Assembly: GCF_006345805.1 (NCBI RefSeq)
Contig: NC_042998.1
Span: 83,576,001-83,640,000 of the forward strand
Direction: 5' to 3'
DNA: 64,000 bases
Origin: Octopus sinensis
Lineage: Eukaryota
The first letter of the stretch is position 1. Each line of letters begins with the position of its first letter. Position numbers and translations under genes: made by a program. Under the pieces are notes generated by a model. It saw only the letters and a list, made by a program, of their open reading frames with translations, had not been told where the DNA came from and did no database searches. Below, piece after piece: positions 18,601 through 24,211 of this stretch.

Positions 18601-19385
18601 CAACTGTCATTGCCAGTGCCTTCTGCCCGATGTTTTGAGTCGCCATTTGTCGTCGGGAAAACCATTTGCAAAAGCCAATCTTGCCACCTTCTCTAGGCCC
18701 TCTCCGGTAAAACCAGATAGCATGACCAGTCTCCGAACCTCTGCAGCATACTTTTCGTCTGTTCCCTGCGCACCTGACCGTTCCCAGCTTAACAAACGCG
18801 ACGTACATTCCTTCCGTATTGGCTTCTTTGAAGCACTGCTCGATCTTCGCCGAGTTCAGTTGGTCTTCCTCATCCACCTCGAAGTTCAGCGCCAACGCGC
18901 TTCCCTTCAGATACATGGCCATGAGACCTGCTACATCGCTGATGACTTGTAGTCTGGCCACCACCATGATCTTACGGATCCAGGCGATCACATCTCGTTT
19001 GCTACAGAAAGGTCTGACCGCATCGTTGCCGATTCTTATCTTCGCTGTCATCTCCTGGAAGAGGACAACAACAGAAAAATATATTCATATACGAGAGCCG
19101 AAATAGCTTGTGGTATGAGGGAACTGTACTGCGGGGATAGAATATGATTCACCTACCTCTCGTTGACAGCTGTCTAACTGTGTTAAGTTCAAACACGTGC
19201 TCTTCCCGTCTCACCTAGCGTTAGCAGCTGGTCCACTCGCGTCCGTTCACCACCTCTACCCCAACTCGAAATAGCACAACTCTAGTCTTGCTTCTTTCAC
19301 TTTCTCTCTCGCCCTTCCTGTTCCGGTGGAGCCCTTCGGCCGTTGACGTCACAGCCCTTTCCTTCCGCTTCATCTCATCCCCACA
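15683..19385 (-). mobile_element. Degenerate compact Gypsy-like LTR retrotransposon (element 1)
   Basis: LTRs 15683-15966 and 19109-19385 (TG...CA); TSD GACAC/GACAT splitting a SINE; gag 18488-19051, CCHC knuckle CYRYRQTGHIARNC, protease ALVDTDC, partial RT, RNase H, integrase LAVDVTHYRQGTYLSMID; many stops and frameshifts. Confidence 0.88.
19097..19108 (-). other. Primer-binding site of element 1, complementary to tRNA-Phe nt 1-12
   Basis: Plus strand GCCGAAATAGCT directly followed by LTR TGTGG; identical to the 5' end of metazoan tRNA-Phe(GAA) as recalled. Confidence 0.75.
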
Positions 19386-19975
19386 GACATCCTAAGCAAG
19401 TGTCTTCTTTAGTCCTGGGCCGACCATTGCTTTCTAAGGGAACTTGCTAGTGGAAACTGTTGCTGTTCTTGTGTTTACGTGTGGTGGTGGTGGTGGTGGT
19501 GGGGCTCTTTAACCTGTCTAAAATGTTATTAAATCTTTTTTTAATATAATCATTATTCTTGAGCGTTCAAATCACGCCGAGGTCAACATTGCTTTTCATC
19601 CTTTCGGGAACGACAAAATAAAGTACCACTCAATATTCGACTTGATGGTATTGACATAACCCTCCCCTCAAAATTGCTAGCCCAGTGCCAAAATTTGAAA
19701 CAATTATTATTATTATTATTATTATTATTATTATTATTATTGTTATTATTATTATTATTATTATTGTTATTATTATTTTATGTTTAACTTTCGCTTTACA
19801 TTTGTACAAGTTGGCTCCAAGTCTCACCCAGAGATTTCAAGAGACAAGTTAGACGTTGATGTTTGTGTTGTGCTTAGGGTGCCATATACTTGGTTTTGTA
19901 CATAGTGTTGTTCTAGAGAATGTTTAAGAAACCATAAGAAAATTATGTGTTTGTTTTAAAATTTGAGATTACATA

Positions 19976-22900
19976 TGTACTGTGATGGAGAAAAAAGACA
20001 ACAGAAAAAGAAGCAAAAAGGACAAAGAAATACAGAGACTTTACCTGTTGACCTAGGCGGGATGAGCGATCACTGTCAAGAAAAAACACGTCCTTGCACG
20101 CTGCCGTCTCTCATCGAACTATCCACACATGCTGCCGGCCCACGCATGCTCCCGTGGCTCTTCTGCCGGCCCCTGCAGTCTTCACTTCCGTTTACCTCAT
20201 CTGCAATCCTCTCCACCAACACTATATAGCTCATCACAGCCCATAACACCACAATCCCACCCCCCGATCTACAGATCATTCAACCGGCTTTCTCACTCAT
20301 TCCTCGCTCTCGAACTCACACCTTAACTGGTTTCATAATCAGTCAACCAGGGAGGAGGGTGTCGCTCCCTCTGTGGTCGCCGTGTGACCCAGCTACTGGC
20401 CTGAGTTCCTGGCATGCTGCTGCTGGCTTCATCATCTTGCCTACTGCTGCTGTCTTCATCTTCTTGCCCGCCACTGCTGGTTCCATCCTCTGAGGCATTG
20501 ACAGTCTTCCGCACACACAAAACATGGCGTGGCATACCATCGACAGAGACGTTGTTCTTCGAATTGATGGAGGTTATTGTTCCCTTTCCCCATCGTGATG
20601 TACACCGTGCGTTTGGGGATTTTATCAAAGAATTCTTCCCCGACCTGCACGACGGCGTGATCTTCCTTTGTCCCGGGTCGCATTGATGCAGTACATGGAT
20701 GCCTTCACTCGTACCTGAATATTGTCACACCGACTCCTCAGCCTGTCCTGTCCTGGGTGATATATTGTACCAAAGGACGGTCTCGATTGGTAAAATGTGG
20801 CCCCTCTCTGCCATAGTCTTGATTGTACGATGATGCCTTTCCACCACTCCATTTCCACTTGGCCGGTATGCCGCCTGAAGAAGCGGTTGACCTACCACCC
20901 ATCACGCATGTCTTTCAGCACCTCCGAGCGAAATGAGGTTTCATTATCCAGAAGCAGCTCATCCACGGGGCCTCGTTCCAGGAATATCTCATTTAGTATT
21001 AACACGATTTCCTCTGCGGTCCTCGTCTTCATCTCCCTCCATATGGCCAACCGTCCCGGTCCGCAATCAACCATTGAGAGGTATGTCCCCTGCCGGTAGT
21101 GTGTTATGACAACTGCCAATCGTTTTCAGTTGTGATCCACTGGAATACTTCCCGCCTCATGTACGTCCGGAGCAGGGTCGATGGACTGACACCTTCACAG
21201 CTGCTAACCACTCTCTGCACGCTCCGTCTTGTTACATCGGAGTCAACTCTTCTGACTAGGAACAATGCCCTGTCCACCCCCATGTGATGTATGGTATGCA
21301 ATCTTCTCAACTCCGAGTCACCCAGACGGCATACTGCAGCCACAGCCTGCTCTGCATCCTCTGGCACCTGCAACCAGGCTCGCTTTACCCTGGTCTGGAC
21401 GTCTGCCCTGTTCTCAGAAGGCACAAAGATCACGCTCAGCTTCAGATCGAACTCAGCGGTTAGTTCACGCAGTATCCCCAATCGACGCTTTACCAACATC
21501 TCAGCAGGTCCTTTGGTTCATACACCCCGCTCATTGATGATGACTGCTGTCACTCAACAAAGTACAGTGACCGAATCGGTCCTAATTTCTATGGTGCGCA
21601 GCCCTCACTTCAAATCTAGATTCACTCCCTTCGACACGGCATCCAGCTCCGCCACATTTATATGGTTGCAGTTATCCGTCTTCCTGAGCCAGACTGCATC
21701 TTCCACCACGACGCCTCCCACTTCCAAGACAACCCCTATTGTGATGCTACTGGTGTCACACCATACGATCTCGCTCTTTGATTTGGGAACATACCAATTG
21801 TCCCTCACTGGATCCTCTGCTCTCACTTTGACCAAGACTTCCTGTATCATGTCGGTCGTCTTCTCCCCCACTCTATCGTTCCACTTCGCTCCTTCGGCTC
21901 GTCTCTTGATGAAGCTACATGCTATTCAGAGCCACCCTGCAATCGAATAGTGTCCCACCAGCTTCCCATACACTGAGAACAGTTCCCGTCTACTCATGCT
22001 GGTGCCCAGTTCGGGGATTTCGTTCCCTCGCCGGAACACCAACGCGCCGGCCTTGTCTCTCCATAGCTTGAGGCCCAGCGCAGCACCTCCCTCCATCGCT
22101 TCTGGTGGCTTGGCGATGAGTCCAAAACTCTTCAGGTGGCCTATGACCTCCGTTGCTGGCATTACGTCATCCACCAGGATGTCATCAATGTACAAATTGG
22201 TGGCCCTTTTTAACCTTTCCCATGATGGCCTTGAGAATTGTTGCCATAATCTTTGGCGCTGAATTTAGCCCGAACCCCAGCCTGGTCAGACAGTATGTCC
22301 GGCCCTTATACCTGACAAGCTGATACTTCCACAGTCTCTCAGCCACATGCACCTGCAGGTATGCCGACCTCAAATCGACGATCGTGGAGGCCTCTGTCAT
22401 TTGCCTCCACTCTCGCAAGGTGTCCCCGCAGACATATGTGGCCTCGCCGCCTGTATTCAGCTCTCGGAAGTCAAGCACTGGCCTGACCTTATGCTTTGTG
22501 GGCTGTATCACCGCCATCAGCGGCAGGACTCCGCTCTCTACTTCTTCTTCCCAAGGGATCAATATGCCCTCCTTAATCCACCGCTCCACCTCCCCCTCGA
22601 ACTCACTTCTGCCATCTCCTTTCAGAGTATGCTGATAGCACCCACTTTATTTTTTAACGTCGAGGGCTCTCCCTTCCAGTGCCACTCCACTGTCCACCTC
22701 TGGCCATTGAAGACAGCACGAAAGACCCGGTCTTCAATGGTGTATGCAGCATACTTTTCTTCGCGGTTCTCACCAATGCACGGTCTCGCCATACACGGTT
22801 TCCCCGCAAACCCGAACATTATACCGGCCTTGTTGATAGTGACACCTCCTAAACGGGTGATTGCATCCATCCCCATCACCACGGCAATCTCGTCCACCAA

Positions 22901-24211
22901 GTGGCCAACCACAATTACTCGCAGCGTTAGCTTTGTTCTCTGCACCACAATCTGCGCATCTGTAATGCCTTCACAGTGTACCTCTCTTCCGTCGACTGCC
23001 CTTATACTGCTTTCTCCACTCCATGTCTCTGCCACTTCTGGAGTTATCAGGGTCGTCATACAGCCCGTGTCCACAAGGGCTCGCAAGATCTTCCCCTCCA
23101 CCAGAATGTCGACTACAGGTAACGATAAACGCGCTTCTATTGATCCGAAGGGATAACTACCGGCGCAGTAGTCTCCCTTAGACCGTTTCCCGGCAGACAT
23201 TCGCTGGCTATATGTCCCGCTTCTCGACACCGGTACCAAACGGCATCAGGCTTGAGTGACTTGCAGTCTCGTACCATAGGCGGGCCCTGACACTGGAAAC
23301 ACTGTCCTTTGAATGGTCGTACACGTTTCTTGTTTGACCCCTCTCCGCTGCTCCTTGCTCGGCCACTTTTCGTTGTTGCAGTCGCTACTACCGGCGTTGT
23401 CCTGCAATACGAAACTAGCACGCGAGCCCGAGATATAATGTCTGCCATCGCCATAGAGTTAATGTTCGGCAGCTTTTGCAACTCGACCGACATGTGGTCA
23501 GAAAAGCCAGTCACAAACGCTAACTTAACCGTTCGGTCCAGTGATTCGCCTTCATATCCCGCCAGTTTAGCCAATCTTCTGAGCTCATTCGTAAATACGT
23601 CGACCTGTTCGCCAGTTCACTTGCTTTCCTCAGACGAGCGTACGCTTCGAACATCCCTTCTGCAAAGGCCTCCATCAAACAGATTGCTATTTTTTCCGCG
23701 CTAAGCTAGTCCCTTTCTTCCATTTCTAGGTATAGCGCCAACGCCGAACCATCTAGGTACAGCGGTATAAAACTCGCTAAGTCGTTTACACCGTGGTGTT
23801 TCGCAACCAACTTTATCTTCTTCAACCGAGCGACTACATCCGTGTCACCGCAAAACAGTTTGACCACATCGTTCGAAATACGGACTACACTCATCATTCG
23901 TTTTTTTTCTTTTTCTTTTTAGTTATGGGCCGAAATAGCTTGTAGTGTGATAGAGGAAAAAGAAGCAAAAGGGAGAAAGAAATACAGAGAGGTTACCTGC
24001 TGACCAAGGCGGGATAAGCAATCACTGTCAAGAAAAAAACGTCCTTGCAAGCTGCCGTCTCTCTTCGAATTGCCAACTAGCACTTTTTGCCCACGCATTC
24101 CCCCGTGGATCTTCCGCCGGCCCCTGCAGTTTTCACTTCCGTTTACCTCATCTGCAATCCTCTCCACCAACACCACATCTCATCACAGCCCATAACACCA
24201 CAAACACCACA
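19976..24211 (-). mobile_element. Degenerate compact Gypsy-like LTR retrotransposon (element 2), about 4.2 kb
   Basis: LTRs 19976-20253 and 23941-24211; 5-bp TSD ACATA; PPT GGGGGGTGGGAT; gag with two CCHC-like knuckles, protease ALVDTGC, RT VDLRSAYLQ..GFGLNSAP..YIDD, RNase H WCDTSS..HINVAELDAV, integrase, all disrupted. Confidence 0.92.
23929..23940 (-). other. Primer-binding site of element 2, complementary to tRNA-Phe nt 1-12
   Basis: Plus strand GCCGAAATAGCT directly followed by LTR TGTAG. Confidence 0.75.

Follow-up and report, generated by a model that had tools for sequence, protein, structure and literature searches.

The Drosophila element copia, and likewise 1731, is reportedly primed by a 5' fragment of the initiator tRNA-Met, a result attributed to Kikuchi et al. 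in 1986; the copia site pairs with the internal, anticodon-stem region of this tRNA, lacks TGG, and uses a primer of about 39 nt. Ty5 is said to be primed by the anticodon stem-loop of tRNAiMet (work of Ke et al. in 1999), and mouse IAP and HERV-F use canonical 3'-end tRNA-Phe priming; the self-priming duplex of Tf1 measures 11 nt. In Tf1 an RNA 5' terminus serves as a very short primer; its site abuts U5, and the primer is freed by the RNase H of the element (PMC4600332, citing Levin 1995, 1996). Among other animal LTR elements, Troyka and the Kuafuorterviruses are 5-6 kb long (PMC11673190, PMC12440569, PMC9040795) and combine a 3-bp target site duplication (TSD), CG..CG termini and an [I/V/L]ADD motif in the reverse transcriptase (RT) (PMC11673190, PMC12440569); Odin was reported from sea anemones only, and an Odin screen of 1,710 protostome genomes found none (PMC11673190, PMC12440569, PMC9040795). 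Primer sites are undiscussed in these three papers.

The window, a 64,000-nt stretch of the Octopus sinensis genome, contains two LTR retrotransposons whose predicted primer-binding site, AGCTATTTCGGC, is the exact complement of nucleotides 1-12 of tRNA-Phe(GAA), taking the human and Drosophila sequences as reference. As in copia, the primer would be a 5'-derived piece of a tRNA with a new 3' end made by cleavage, not CCA, and the site is without TGG; it differs in that copia uses an internal stretch of tRNAiMet, whereas the octopus site is complementary to tRNA-Phe from its first nucleotide to its twelfth, which would put the cut in the D stem and leave no part of the primer unpaired. A site for the internal (anticodon-arm) region of initiator tRNA-Met was not found, the complementarity being to tRNA-Phe nucleotides 1-12 only, and the domain order of Ty1/copia elements is also unlike that of the octopus family. 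Ty5 likewise uses a non-CCA part of a tRNA, but an internal region of another tRNA and not the 5' terminus. Tf1, Tj1 and sushi elements share with the mechanism proposed for the octopus family a very short RNA 5' end annealed to a site that abuts U5, with plus-strand run-off possible; their primer comes from their own transcript and has its complement in the LTR, whereas the predicted partner here is a host tRNA.

Two decayed copies in the octopus window

Both elements lie on the minus strand, with the following features (window positions):

15678..15682 (-): element 1, TSD on the 3' side, GACAC on the plus strand; in element sense ...CATACCACA followed by GTGTC
15683..15966 (-): element 1, 3' LTR (TG...CA); the LTR pair aligns over 287 nt at 79% identity
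15967..15981 (-): element 1, decayed polypurine tract, GAGATCAGGCCAGTG
15982..19096 (-): element 1, internal region with gag and pol remnants, many stops and frameshifts
19097..19108 (-): element 1, predicted primer-binding site, AGCTATTTCGGC, complementary to tRNA-Phe nucleotides 1-12
19109..19385 (-): element 1, 5' LTR
19386..19390 (-): element 1, TSD on the 5' side, GACAT on the plus strand
19971..19975 (-): element 2, TSD on the 3' side, ACATA on the plus strand; in element sense ...CACAGTACA followed by TATGT
19976..20261 (-): element 2, 3' LTR; the LTR pair aligns over 258 nt at 86% identity
20262..20273 (-): element 2, polypurine tract, GTAGATCGGGGG
20274..23928 (-): element 2, internal region, nearly full length, several stops and frameshifts
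23929..23940 (-): element 2, predicted primer-binding site, AGCTATTTCGGC
23941..24211 (-): element 2, 5' LTR
24212..24216 (-): element 2, TSD on the 5' side, ACATA on the plus strand

The TSDs proposed in the initial annotation (GACAC/GACAT for element 1, ACATA for element 2) do flank both LTR pairs; in element sense, the element 1 copies GTGTC (3') and ATGTC (5') agree at four of five positions. In intact relatives the polypurine tract stands at the corresponding place, as ATCAGGGGGGAG directly before TGTG. Element 1 retains a broken gag (about 18354-19051) and pol remnants (about 16123-17970) with RT, DUF7047, RNase H and integrase. It has lost the protease and the RT N terminus by deletion, and tblastn with the pol of an intact relative matched residues 169-789 only, in several frames. 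In element 2, gag runs from an ATG at 23897 to about 23149, protease matches lie inside the reading frame 22625-23245, and RT, DUF7047, RNase H and integrase extend down to about 20455; five pieces match residues 18-807 of the pol of an intact relative. Pfam identified RVP, RVT_1 and DUF7047 in the window remnants.

The LTRs of the two elements are unalignable except for their last 10 nt, which together with the 12-mer are identical at 20 of 22 positions; long stretches of their internal regions show 72-79% identity, and the elements are therefore related members of one family. The LTRs do look unrelated, as first described, but the elements are not independent lineages. The earlier statement that identity ends exactly at the 12-mer holds for its 3' flank; in the 5' flank the two elements also have the LTR tip TCAYACYACA in common. 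Both elements are old, dead copies of one compact LTR-retrotransposon family.

The window contains two exact matches to AGCTATTTCGGC, at 19097-19108 and 23929-23940 of the minus strand, and upstream of each, with zero spacer, stands the ...CA end of the 5' LTR, just as first described. With up to one mismatch there are three matches against 0.16 expected, and at least three were reached in 0 of 100 shuffles. The third match (one mismatch, 43407-43418) has neither an LTR nor a family pol in its vicinity and is taken as chance. A TGG-type site was found after the 5' LTR of neither element, a canonical 3'-end site for tRNA-Phe nowhere in the window, and tRNA genes neither in the window nor in any retrieved locus. 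The supposed echo of the motif in the element 1 LTRs (TGCTATTTCGAG / TACTCTTTCGGC) could not be upheld; it has the sense of the site, is not complementary to it, and is missing from the LTRs of all other elements.

A compact gag-pol family marked by DUF7047

The family to which the octopus copies belong is about 4.4 kb long, carries gag-pol marked by the Pfam domain DUF7047, and occurs in cephalopods, crustaceans and trichinellid nematodes, and in many metagenome contigs. Its layout is LTR, 12-nt site, gag, pol, polypurine tract, LTR; gag consists of Retrotrans_gag and a CCHC knuckle, and pol runs in the order protease, RT (YIDD), DUF7047, RNase H, H2C2/DDE integrase. An intact relative gave Pfam matches to Retrotrans_gag, zf-CCHC, RVT_1, DUF7047, RNase_H, Integrase_H2C2 and rve. 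The termini are TG...CA and the TSDs have 5 bp (AAAAG, AACAT, ATTTC, ATGTT and AAAAC in relatives).

The Ty3/Gypsy domain order (protease, RT, RNase H, integrase) is present. Odin, lokiretroviruses and retrovirus-like elements are characterised by a dual RNase H, one a degenerate tether and the other acquired; going by Pfam matches only, the intact relative has DUF7047 as an additional domain after RT and before RNase H, and its RNase_H match is of the cellular type. Family pol matched RVT_1 at only 2e-5, with RNase_H (PF00075)/RVT_3 in place of RT_RNaseH, and neither a Ty3-type RNase H (RT_RNaseH or RT_RNaseH_2) nor a strong RVT_1 match was found in it; the Gypsy pol in the same window matched RVT_1 at 7e-31 and RT_RNaseH_2 at 3e-29. 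In pairwise comparison the RT is 24% identical to that of the Gypsy element in the window. A young Gypsy element elsewhere in the window, unrelated to the family, has a primer site complementary to a tRNA 3' CCA end. Searched against PDB, the family profile matched retroviral integrases at 1e-15 and HIV/PFV RT at 1e-6 to 5e-10. With Troyka, the Kuafuorterviruses and Odin the family shares the standing of a neglected animal LTR lineage outside classical Gypsy, BEL and Copia, and the order protease, RT, RNase H, integrase; it differs from Troyka and the Kuafuorterviruses in its 5-bp TSDs, TG..CA termini and YIDD motif, and its length of about 4.4 kb and DUF7047 also set it apart.

Conservation of the site after the 5' LTR

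The 12-mer stands directly after the CA of the LTR in 25 non-redundant relatives, which confirms the expectation that the position is conserved in other family members; the sites were collected with the motif, so that invariance at its fixed positions is partly by construction. Its position before gag was checked independently, and in every locus with the gag 5' end present it adjoins the CA of the LTR. The gag ATG follows immediately in 6 of the 25 sites and within 1-17 nt in most others, an arrangement that would leave no space for an alternative primer site. Conservation is limited to the 12-mer and the three LTR bases before it (ACA); nearly all variation falls at site positions 7-9, opposite tRNA nucleotides 4-6, and the information drops within two bases of site position 12, where the mature tRNA 5' end would fall. 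Copies with LTRs 99.6-100% identical and open pol reading frames carry the 12-mer (L004, in which gag is also open; L047 from Trichuris suis; L048 from a crab; L049 from a barnacle), and on this ground it is predicted to be functional as a primer site.

The proximity to gag, whose ATG directly follows the 12-mer in many copies, would also suit a cis element with another role (packaging, dimerisation, translation-start context) and a coincidental match to tRNA-Phe, priming then being achieved by other means. We consider this very unlikely: an exact 12-nt match to a tRNA 5' end would arise by chance about three times in a million (some 50 tRNA 5' ends among 4^12 possible 12-mers), no LTR retroelement can do without a primer site next to U5, and there is neither room nor a candidate for another one, and the divergent relative L052 carries a canonical tRNA-Phe site at the same place.

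At 12 nt, the site is near in length to the 11-nt duplex of Tf1. In having no TGG, it resembles Tf1/Tj1 (PMC4600332). Both traits would suit a sushi-type mechanism, in which the element's RNA would anneal to the 12-mer by its own 5' end and be cleaved by RNase H to yield the primer. Yet the complement of the site, allowing up to three mismatches, is absent from 9 of 10 LTRs tested, the best complement in any of them having three mismatches (L004), and a complement with at most one mismatch was not found on the element-sense strand of the whole window; self-priming is therefore unsupported, and the initial reading survives what it had named as its own refutation. Self-priming moreover predicts a site that co-varies with each LTR, whereas unalignable LTRs share the same site; and the site equals a tRNA 5' end, with L052 using the 3' end of the same tRNA. 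The lack of an LTR complement and the site shared across unalignable LTRs largely refute Tf1-type self-priming, which we regard as highly improbable.

The 5' end of tRNA-Phe as putative primer

Human tRNA Phe-GAA begins GCCGAAATAGCTCAG (PMC11706605; PMC10505166), and a Drosophila tRNA-Phe 5' probe, GCTCTCCCAACTGAGCTATTTCGGC, is the reverse complement of the human Phe-GAA 5' end (PMC7038984); the start GCCGAAATAGCT assumed at the outset is thus correct for human and fly (PMC10505166, PMC11706605, PMC7038984). In five elements with TTC as middle bases, the tRNA-Phe match, the 12-mer is the sole stretch consistently complementary to tRNA-Phe. The other middle-base variants are CTA, CGA, CGC and CAC. 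Computed energies are -18.7 to -22.7 kcal/mol for perfect 12-mer duplexes and about -10 to -14 kcal/mol for variant sites paired with canonical tRNA-Phe, by which they may be primed with mismatches. TTC and CTA sites are scattered over the pol tree (NJ, midpoint-rooted), and CTA recurs unchanged in more than 14 elements whose LTR sequences are unrelated, so that the middle bases are under constraint and not drifting.

L052 branches outside all members with the 5'-type site in the midpoint-rooted NJ tree. It shares the DUF7047 gag-pol and the tRNA species, and in the same position it reads ...ACA-AG-TGGTGCCGAAACCCGGGA, where TGGTGCCGAAACCCGGGA is complementary at all 18 nt to the tRNA-Phe 3' end, CCA included; the window elements differ in matching the opposite acceptor-stem strand and the start of the D stem. 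Since 5'-type sites begin with AG, and since the canonical site of L052 is separated from CA by the two bases AG, the register is ambiguous; the true site could be 10 nt, and the primer 3' end could be G10 instead of U12.

From the position of the site, we infer with a probability of roughly 70% that tRNA-Phe supplies the primer from its 5' end, released by cleavage within the D stem. The 12 nt that follow U5 would serve as minus-strand primer-binding site by pairing with nucleotides 1-12 of cytoplasmic tRNA-Phe, 5'-GCCGAAAUAGCU-3'; the acceptor and D stems would be opened, presumably by the gag nucleocapsid, for the 5' strand to anneal. It counts against this reading that a 12-nt 5' tRNA fragment would be shorter than the known tRF-5 classes. 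A D-stem cut after U12 (or G10) would supply the 3'-OH, made either by a host nuclease generating a very short 5' tRNA fragment or by the RNase H of the element acting in trans on the RNA duplex, comparable to Tf1 on its own transcript; Tf1/Tj1 are a precedent for a short primer released by RNase H cleavage of an RNA duplex (PMC4600332). RT would then extend the primer into U5/R, and plus-strand strong-stop synthesis would run along the short RNA primer as far as its native 5' terminus, where run-off would regenerate the site and a modified-base stop would not be needed. A point against is that copying of the site from its primer is true of retroviruses, not of Ty1 or Ty3 (PMC7472051).

That the complementarity ends inside the tRNA could also mean that tRNA-Phe stays uncleaved, binds through its 5' end and is extended from an internal 2'-OH, branched as in retron msDNA. 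We know of no LTR retroelement that does so, copia offers a precedent for cleavage, and a branched primer would hinder primer removal and plus-strand transfer. Tf1 is a second cleavage precedent (PMC4600332). Nothing further was found for this alternative, part of the initial proposal, and it is scarcely credible. The initial judgement that priming by a tRNA 5' end is undescribed agrees with full-text literature searches, in which we could not find a description.

The variants CTA, CGA, CGC and CAC mismatch the canonical tRNA-Phe of human and fly, and U8 A9 G10 C11 U12, invariant here, occurs in several tRNAs; the primer might hence be another host RNA with the same motif (another tRNA of the variant hosts with a D-stem start ...AUAGCU, a tRNA-derived SINE or another Pol III transcript). 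This we hold to be unlikely, because all variants retain G1-C2-C3 and A7-U12 and differ only at nucleotides 4-6, as expected of one tRNA's acceptor stem evolving, whereas distinct tRNAs would differ more widely; the TTC type matches tRNA-Phe exactly, and L052 points to tRNA-Phe for the group. Under priming by the tRNA 5' end, the variant sites would need putative tRNAs whose 5' ends read GCCUAGAUAGCU (decapods, metagenome set), GCCUCGAUAGCU (Trichuris), GCCGCGAUAGCU or GCCGUGAUAGCU; human and fly share the canonical end, so that in decapods either this end would have changed within the lineage or another tRNA would serve. The site variants opposite tRNA nucleotides 4-6 would then represent adaptation of the family to each host's form of the same tRNA end.

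The 12-mer of the two window elements and its surroundings

The 64-kb window contains two exact copies of the 12-mer AGCTATTTCGGC, at 19097-19108 and 23929-23940; both lie on the minus strand and, in the sense of the elements, adjoin the ...CA end of a 5' LTR. With at most one mismatch there are three matches against 0.16 expected, a number reached in 0 of 100 shuffles. The third match, a one-mismatch copy at 43407-43418, was set aside as chance since it lies without an LTR or family-like coding sequence around it. The zero-spacer position of both 12-mers behind the LTR and the target-site duplications proposed in the initial annotation are confirmed; the two elements are delimited as follows.

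Terminal features of elements 1 and 2, two decayed LTR retrotransposons in the window
15683-15966, minus strand: 3' LTR of element 1
19109-19385, minus strand: 5' LTR of element 1, 79% identical to its 3' LTR
GACAC / GACAT, plus-strand reading: target-site duplication of element 1
19976-20261, minus strand: 3' LTR of element 2
23941-24211, minus strand: 5' LTR of element 2, 86% identical to its 3' LTR
ACATA / ACATA, plus-strand reading: target-site duplication of element 2

The initial annotation had taken these for independently inserted elements with unrelated-looking LTRs and an identity confined to the 12-mer. The LTRs can indeed be aligned solely at their end, although the match includes the last 10 LTR nucleotides in addition to the 12-mer (20 of 22 positions identical); inside the elements, however, many stretches agree at 72-79% identity. 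The two copies are thus separate insertions from one family, related to each other and not members of independent lineages. Both are dead: the pol of element 2 survives in five pieces that match residues 18-807 of the pol of an intact relative, and element 1 is more broken, its protease and the N-terminal portion of its reverse transcriptase (RT) being gone. Pfam searches of the remnants recovered a retroviral-type aspartic protease, a weak RVT_1 and DUF7047. The integrase remnant of element 1 contains a GA/CT-type microsatellite (16266-16400, minus strand) that translates as EREREREK repeats.

A partial copy of the primer site does lie in the element 1 LTRs, as noted initially (19264-19275, TGCTATTTCGAG; 15841-15852, TACTCTTTCGGC), and if both copies share one ancestor, it may have matched 11 of the 12 site bases; the echo was set aside as not meaningful, since it shares the sense of the site and, among the LTRs tested, is confined to element 1.

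A short interspersed repeat family with the core ...CCGAGGTCGACTTTGCCTTTCATCCTTTCGGGGTCGATAAATTAAGTACCAG... is present in several copies (19577-19656, 24934-25309, 27063-27386), accompanied by (ATT)n microsatellites (15506-15628, 19677-19805, 24857-24922) that flank element 1 on both sides; one such copy with its ATT tail fills the 580-bp gap between the two elements. An ORF remnant at 24225-24700 (minus strand), with element 2 directly downstream, resembles by eye the C-terminal end of a non-LTR retrotransposon ORF2, and Pfam returned no match to it. A young, apparently intact Ty3/Gypsy element occupies 28041-33796 (minus strand), with 587-bp LTRs (33210-33796 and 28041-28626, 99.3% identical) and a pol ORF of 1063 amino acids (28835-32026) that includes RVT_1, RT_RNaseH, H2C2 and rve; its primer site is of the TGG type, one base past the LTR (ACA-G-TGGTGACCCCGAAG), and canonically primed elements are therefore also present in this host genome. 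Further retroelement ORFs between 35337 and 40422 (minus strand), with RVP and RVT_1 at 37590-38840 and an integrase-like stretch at 35337-36128 (minus strand, tblastn), are probably part of another Gypsy-like element.

The DUF7047 family and its conserved site

For the RT fragment of element 2, the highest similarity (66%) was to an Argonauta hians (octopod) protein, with weaker matches in Elysia marginata and Trichuris suis; on these matches the window is probably of cephalopod origin. An intact young relative was found on metagenome contig L004 (1501-5904; LTRs of 464 bp, 99.6% identical; target-site duplication AAAAG); it shows the complete plan within about 4.4 kb, with a gag carrying Retrotrans_gag and a CCHC knuckle, and a pol of 911 amino acids with RT (YIDD-type motif), DUF7047, RNase H (PF00075/RVT_3 type), an H2C2 zinc finger and a DDE integrase. 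Used as query, this pol retrieved 790 proteins below 1e-10, whose named sources include Trichuris, Trichinella, the crab Petrolisthes, the barnacle Amphibalanus and Macrobrachium prawns; JGI metagenome contigs, when scanned, added 42 family loci, and no family members were found among IMG/VR viral contigs. Two contigs of the ENA sample ERZ21867824, labeled "metagenome" (L002 and L004; 324 kb and 471 kb), bear tandem or nested family copies and are evidently animal host DNA. The young L004 element is itself inserted into a third, truncated family member (1287-1581) with the site ...ATTACA-AGCTATTTCGCC, one change from the 12-mer; its gag is nearest (about 40%) to that of L022, a CGC-type element of a separate contig (see the list of variants below), and a CGC-related lineage therefore shows the TTC type in the L004 host. 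The Argonauta element (L001, 4524-9086) lies between two 1.1-kb direct repeats (1-1145 and 9095-10236, 93.7% identical), the second of which begins 9 bp beyond its 3' LTR; it may be nested inside a larger LTR element.

An assignment to Troyka/Kuafuortervirus was rejected on the defining features of that group (3-bp duplications, CG..CG termini, [I/V/L]ADD, 5-6 kb), from which the DUF7047 family differs, and an assignment to Odin appears unlikely, given its reported occurrence in sea anemones only. The family also differs from ordinary Ty3/Gypsy elements, as compared by Pfam profiles and pairwise identity: the window Gypsy pol matches RVT_1 at 7e-31 and RT_RNaseH_2 at 3e-29, whereas the family pol matches RVT_1 at 2e-5 and gives no RT_RNaseH match, and the two are 24% (RT) and 27% (integrase) identical. 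Against the PDB, the family profile matched retroviral integrases at 1e-15 and HIV/PFV RT at 5e-10 to 1e-6.

Every locus that contains the gag start has the 12-mer immediately 3' of ...ACA, and the variants listed next fit AGCTAT-NNN-GGC; they are named here by the middle bases.

Variants of the site and their carriers
TTC: both window elements, L002, L004, L014 and barnacle L049; Argonauta L001 with a 1-nt insertion
CTA: crab L048, prawn L051 and at least 14 metagenome elements with LTRs of unrelated sequence
CGA: Trichuris suis L047
CGC: L022, L028
CAC: L015

A further form, CGCTATCTGTGC (L040 and L043), was considered as the 5' end of another tRNA and rejected; it counts as one decayed copy, since the flanks of the two loci are identical and both fall within the CTA cluster. 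The LTR and site were not recoverable for Trichinella L050 and Elysia L003, and the L025 contig ends short of the site. Across 25 non-redundant sites, conservation covers the 12-mer and the last three LTR bases and no further; as the sites were gathered with a motif, invariance at fixed positions is partly built in, and their position ahead of gag was checked independently by tblastn. Almost all variation falls on positions 7-9, opposite tRNA nt 4-6, and information drops sharply beyond the 12-mer, to 0.82 bits at +1 and near background from +2; the conserved block ends exactly at the first nucleotide of the tRNA. The gag ATG directly abuts the site in 6 of the 25 and lies 1-17 nt away in most others, which leaves no room for a second primer site. 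Four young relatives (L004, L047, L048, L049), whose LTRs are 99.6-100% identical and whose pol frames are open, carry the site, which is therefore functional.

Complementarity to tRNA-Phe and the canonical relative

Human tRNA-Phe(GAA) starts with GCCGAAATAGCTCAG (PMC11706605; PMC10505166), and a probe for the Drosophila 5' end gives these 25 nt in reverse complement (PMC7038984). The window 12-mer therefore complements, without a mismatch, nt 1-12 of a tRNA-Phe that is conserved between fly and human, which bears out the match first proposed. In five TTC-type elements the consistent complementarity to tRNA-Phe is limited to the 12-mer; a bipartite arrangement with a second, Ty3-like contact was rejected, as it would have to draw on isolated 7-9-mers in single elements, none of them shared. 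Perfect 12-bp duplexes amount to -18.7 to -22.7 kcal/mol and the 18-nt canonical duplex to -38, and for the CTA, CGA, CGC and CAC sites paired with canonical tRNA-Phe, in a duplex with an internal loop, the computed value is -10 to -14 kcal/mol. ARAGORN found no tRNA genes in the window and 51 loci (a set excluding L052), a search for canonical sites of the 3' type, designed from the acceptor stems of the variants, gave no match, and literature searches with the variant 5' ends as strings matched unrelated PCR primers only.

The 12-mer could alternatively pair with the 5' end of the element's own transcript, as in the self-priming of Tf1/Tj1, where the short primer is the 5' end of the element's own RNA, freed by RNase H (PMC4600332). 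This explanation was rejected because the LTRs lack a self-complement: with fewer than three mismatches the complement of the own site is absent from every LTR searched, most have none within 3-4, and the window has none on the sense strand of the elements with up to one mismatch.

A single canonical site was seen in the family. The 4566-nt Logan contig L052 encodes gag and pol in fused form; DUF7047 is present, and the gag part is a clear homolog of the family gag. The contig reads ...TTTTACAACA-AG-TGGTGCCGAAACCCGGGA at 126-151, a perfect 18-nt site for the tRNA-Phe 3' end including CCA, behind an LTR boundary set by the ACA motif and not by a target-site duplication. L052 ties the group to tRNA-Phe independently. 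In a neighbor-joining pol tree (midpoint-rooted, without outgroup or support values) L052 falls outside all members with the 5'-end site, which, together with its canonical site, suggests that the lineage has switched from one tRNA end to the other. The TTC and CTA variants are scattered over the same tree, which fits a site that follows the host rather than descent. Since the L052 spacer is AG and all 5'-type sites start with AG, the real site may be 10 nt long, with the primer ending at G10 and not U12. As a speculative origin, an element with an L052-type site could have copied its entire primer tRNA by read-through, with ...CTG-AG-CTATTTCGGC as the resulting end; loss of the stretch between the two AG dinucleotides would then yield precisely the arrangement seen now. 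A mosquito element is reported to have entire tRNA copies adjacent to its primer site (PMC3286476).

A putative tRNA 5'-end priming mode and its meaning

The reading preferred here, with a probability of roughly 70%, is that the 12-mer is the primer site for a cleaved 5' end of tRNA-Phe; it builds on the directly established position, conservation and complementarity of the site and on the absence of a self-complement. The 5' strand of the tRNA would anneal to the site, a cut in the D-stem, due to a host nuclease or, if Tf1 is a guide, to the element's own RNase H acting in trans, would supply the 3'-OH, RT would extend it into U5, and plus-strand strong-stop synthesis would run off the 5' end of the short primer and thereby restore the site. 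The broader proposition, that the whole DUF7047 lineage of animals (molluscs, crustaceans, trichinellid nematodes and the hosts behind the metagenome contigs) switched its minus-strand primer from the CCA end of tRNA-Phe to its first 10-12 nt and needs a D-stem cut, stands at about even odds.

How reverse transcription begins is among the steps that define retroviruses and LTR elements, and textbook primers of LTR elements are of three kinds: the tRNA 3' end, an internal or half tRNA, and self-priming. The copia primer is a 5' fragment of tRNAiMet that pairs through an internal region, and that of Ty5 is an anticodon stem-loop. Unlike these and Tf1/Tj1, the DUF7047 family would use a short, fully paired primer from the 5' terminus of a host tRNA and, if this is true, would represent a fourth priming mode in a family that spans several animal phyla. 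No description of priming by a tRNA 5' end was found in the open-access full-text literature, papers on these lineages included; there is a minor though appreciable chance that the mode has been noted somewhere, for example in Repbase notes or older literature.

The proposal predicts that tRNA-Phe is cleaved after nt 10-12, with release of a 5' fragment too short to be retained in standard small-RNA libraries. It also predicts that tRNA-Phe, or one other tRNA, starts with GCCGAAAUAGCU in Octopus/Argonauta and Amphibalanus amphitrite, and that a matching tRNA starts with GCCUAGAUAGCU in Petrolisthes manimaculis and Macrobrachium rosenbergii and with GCCUCGAUAGCU in Trichuris suis. LTR annotation tools that match tRNA 3' ends would score the DUF7047 family as having no primer site. 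In mammals, 3' tRNA fragments restrain endogenous retroviruses (PMC7472051), which raises the question of whether 5' tRNA fragments likewise restrain DUF7047 elements; with the canonical L052 beside its 5'-type relatives, the family would offer a natural system for studying how retroelements change their primer.
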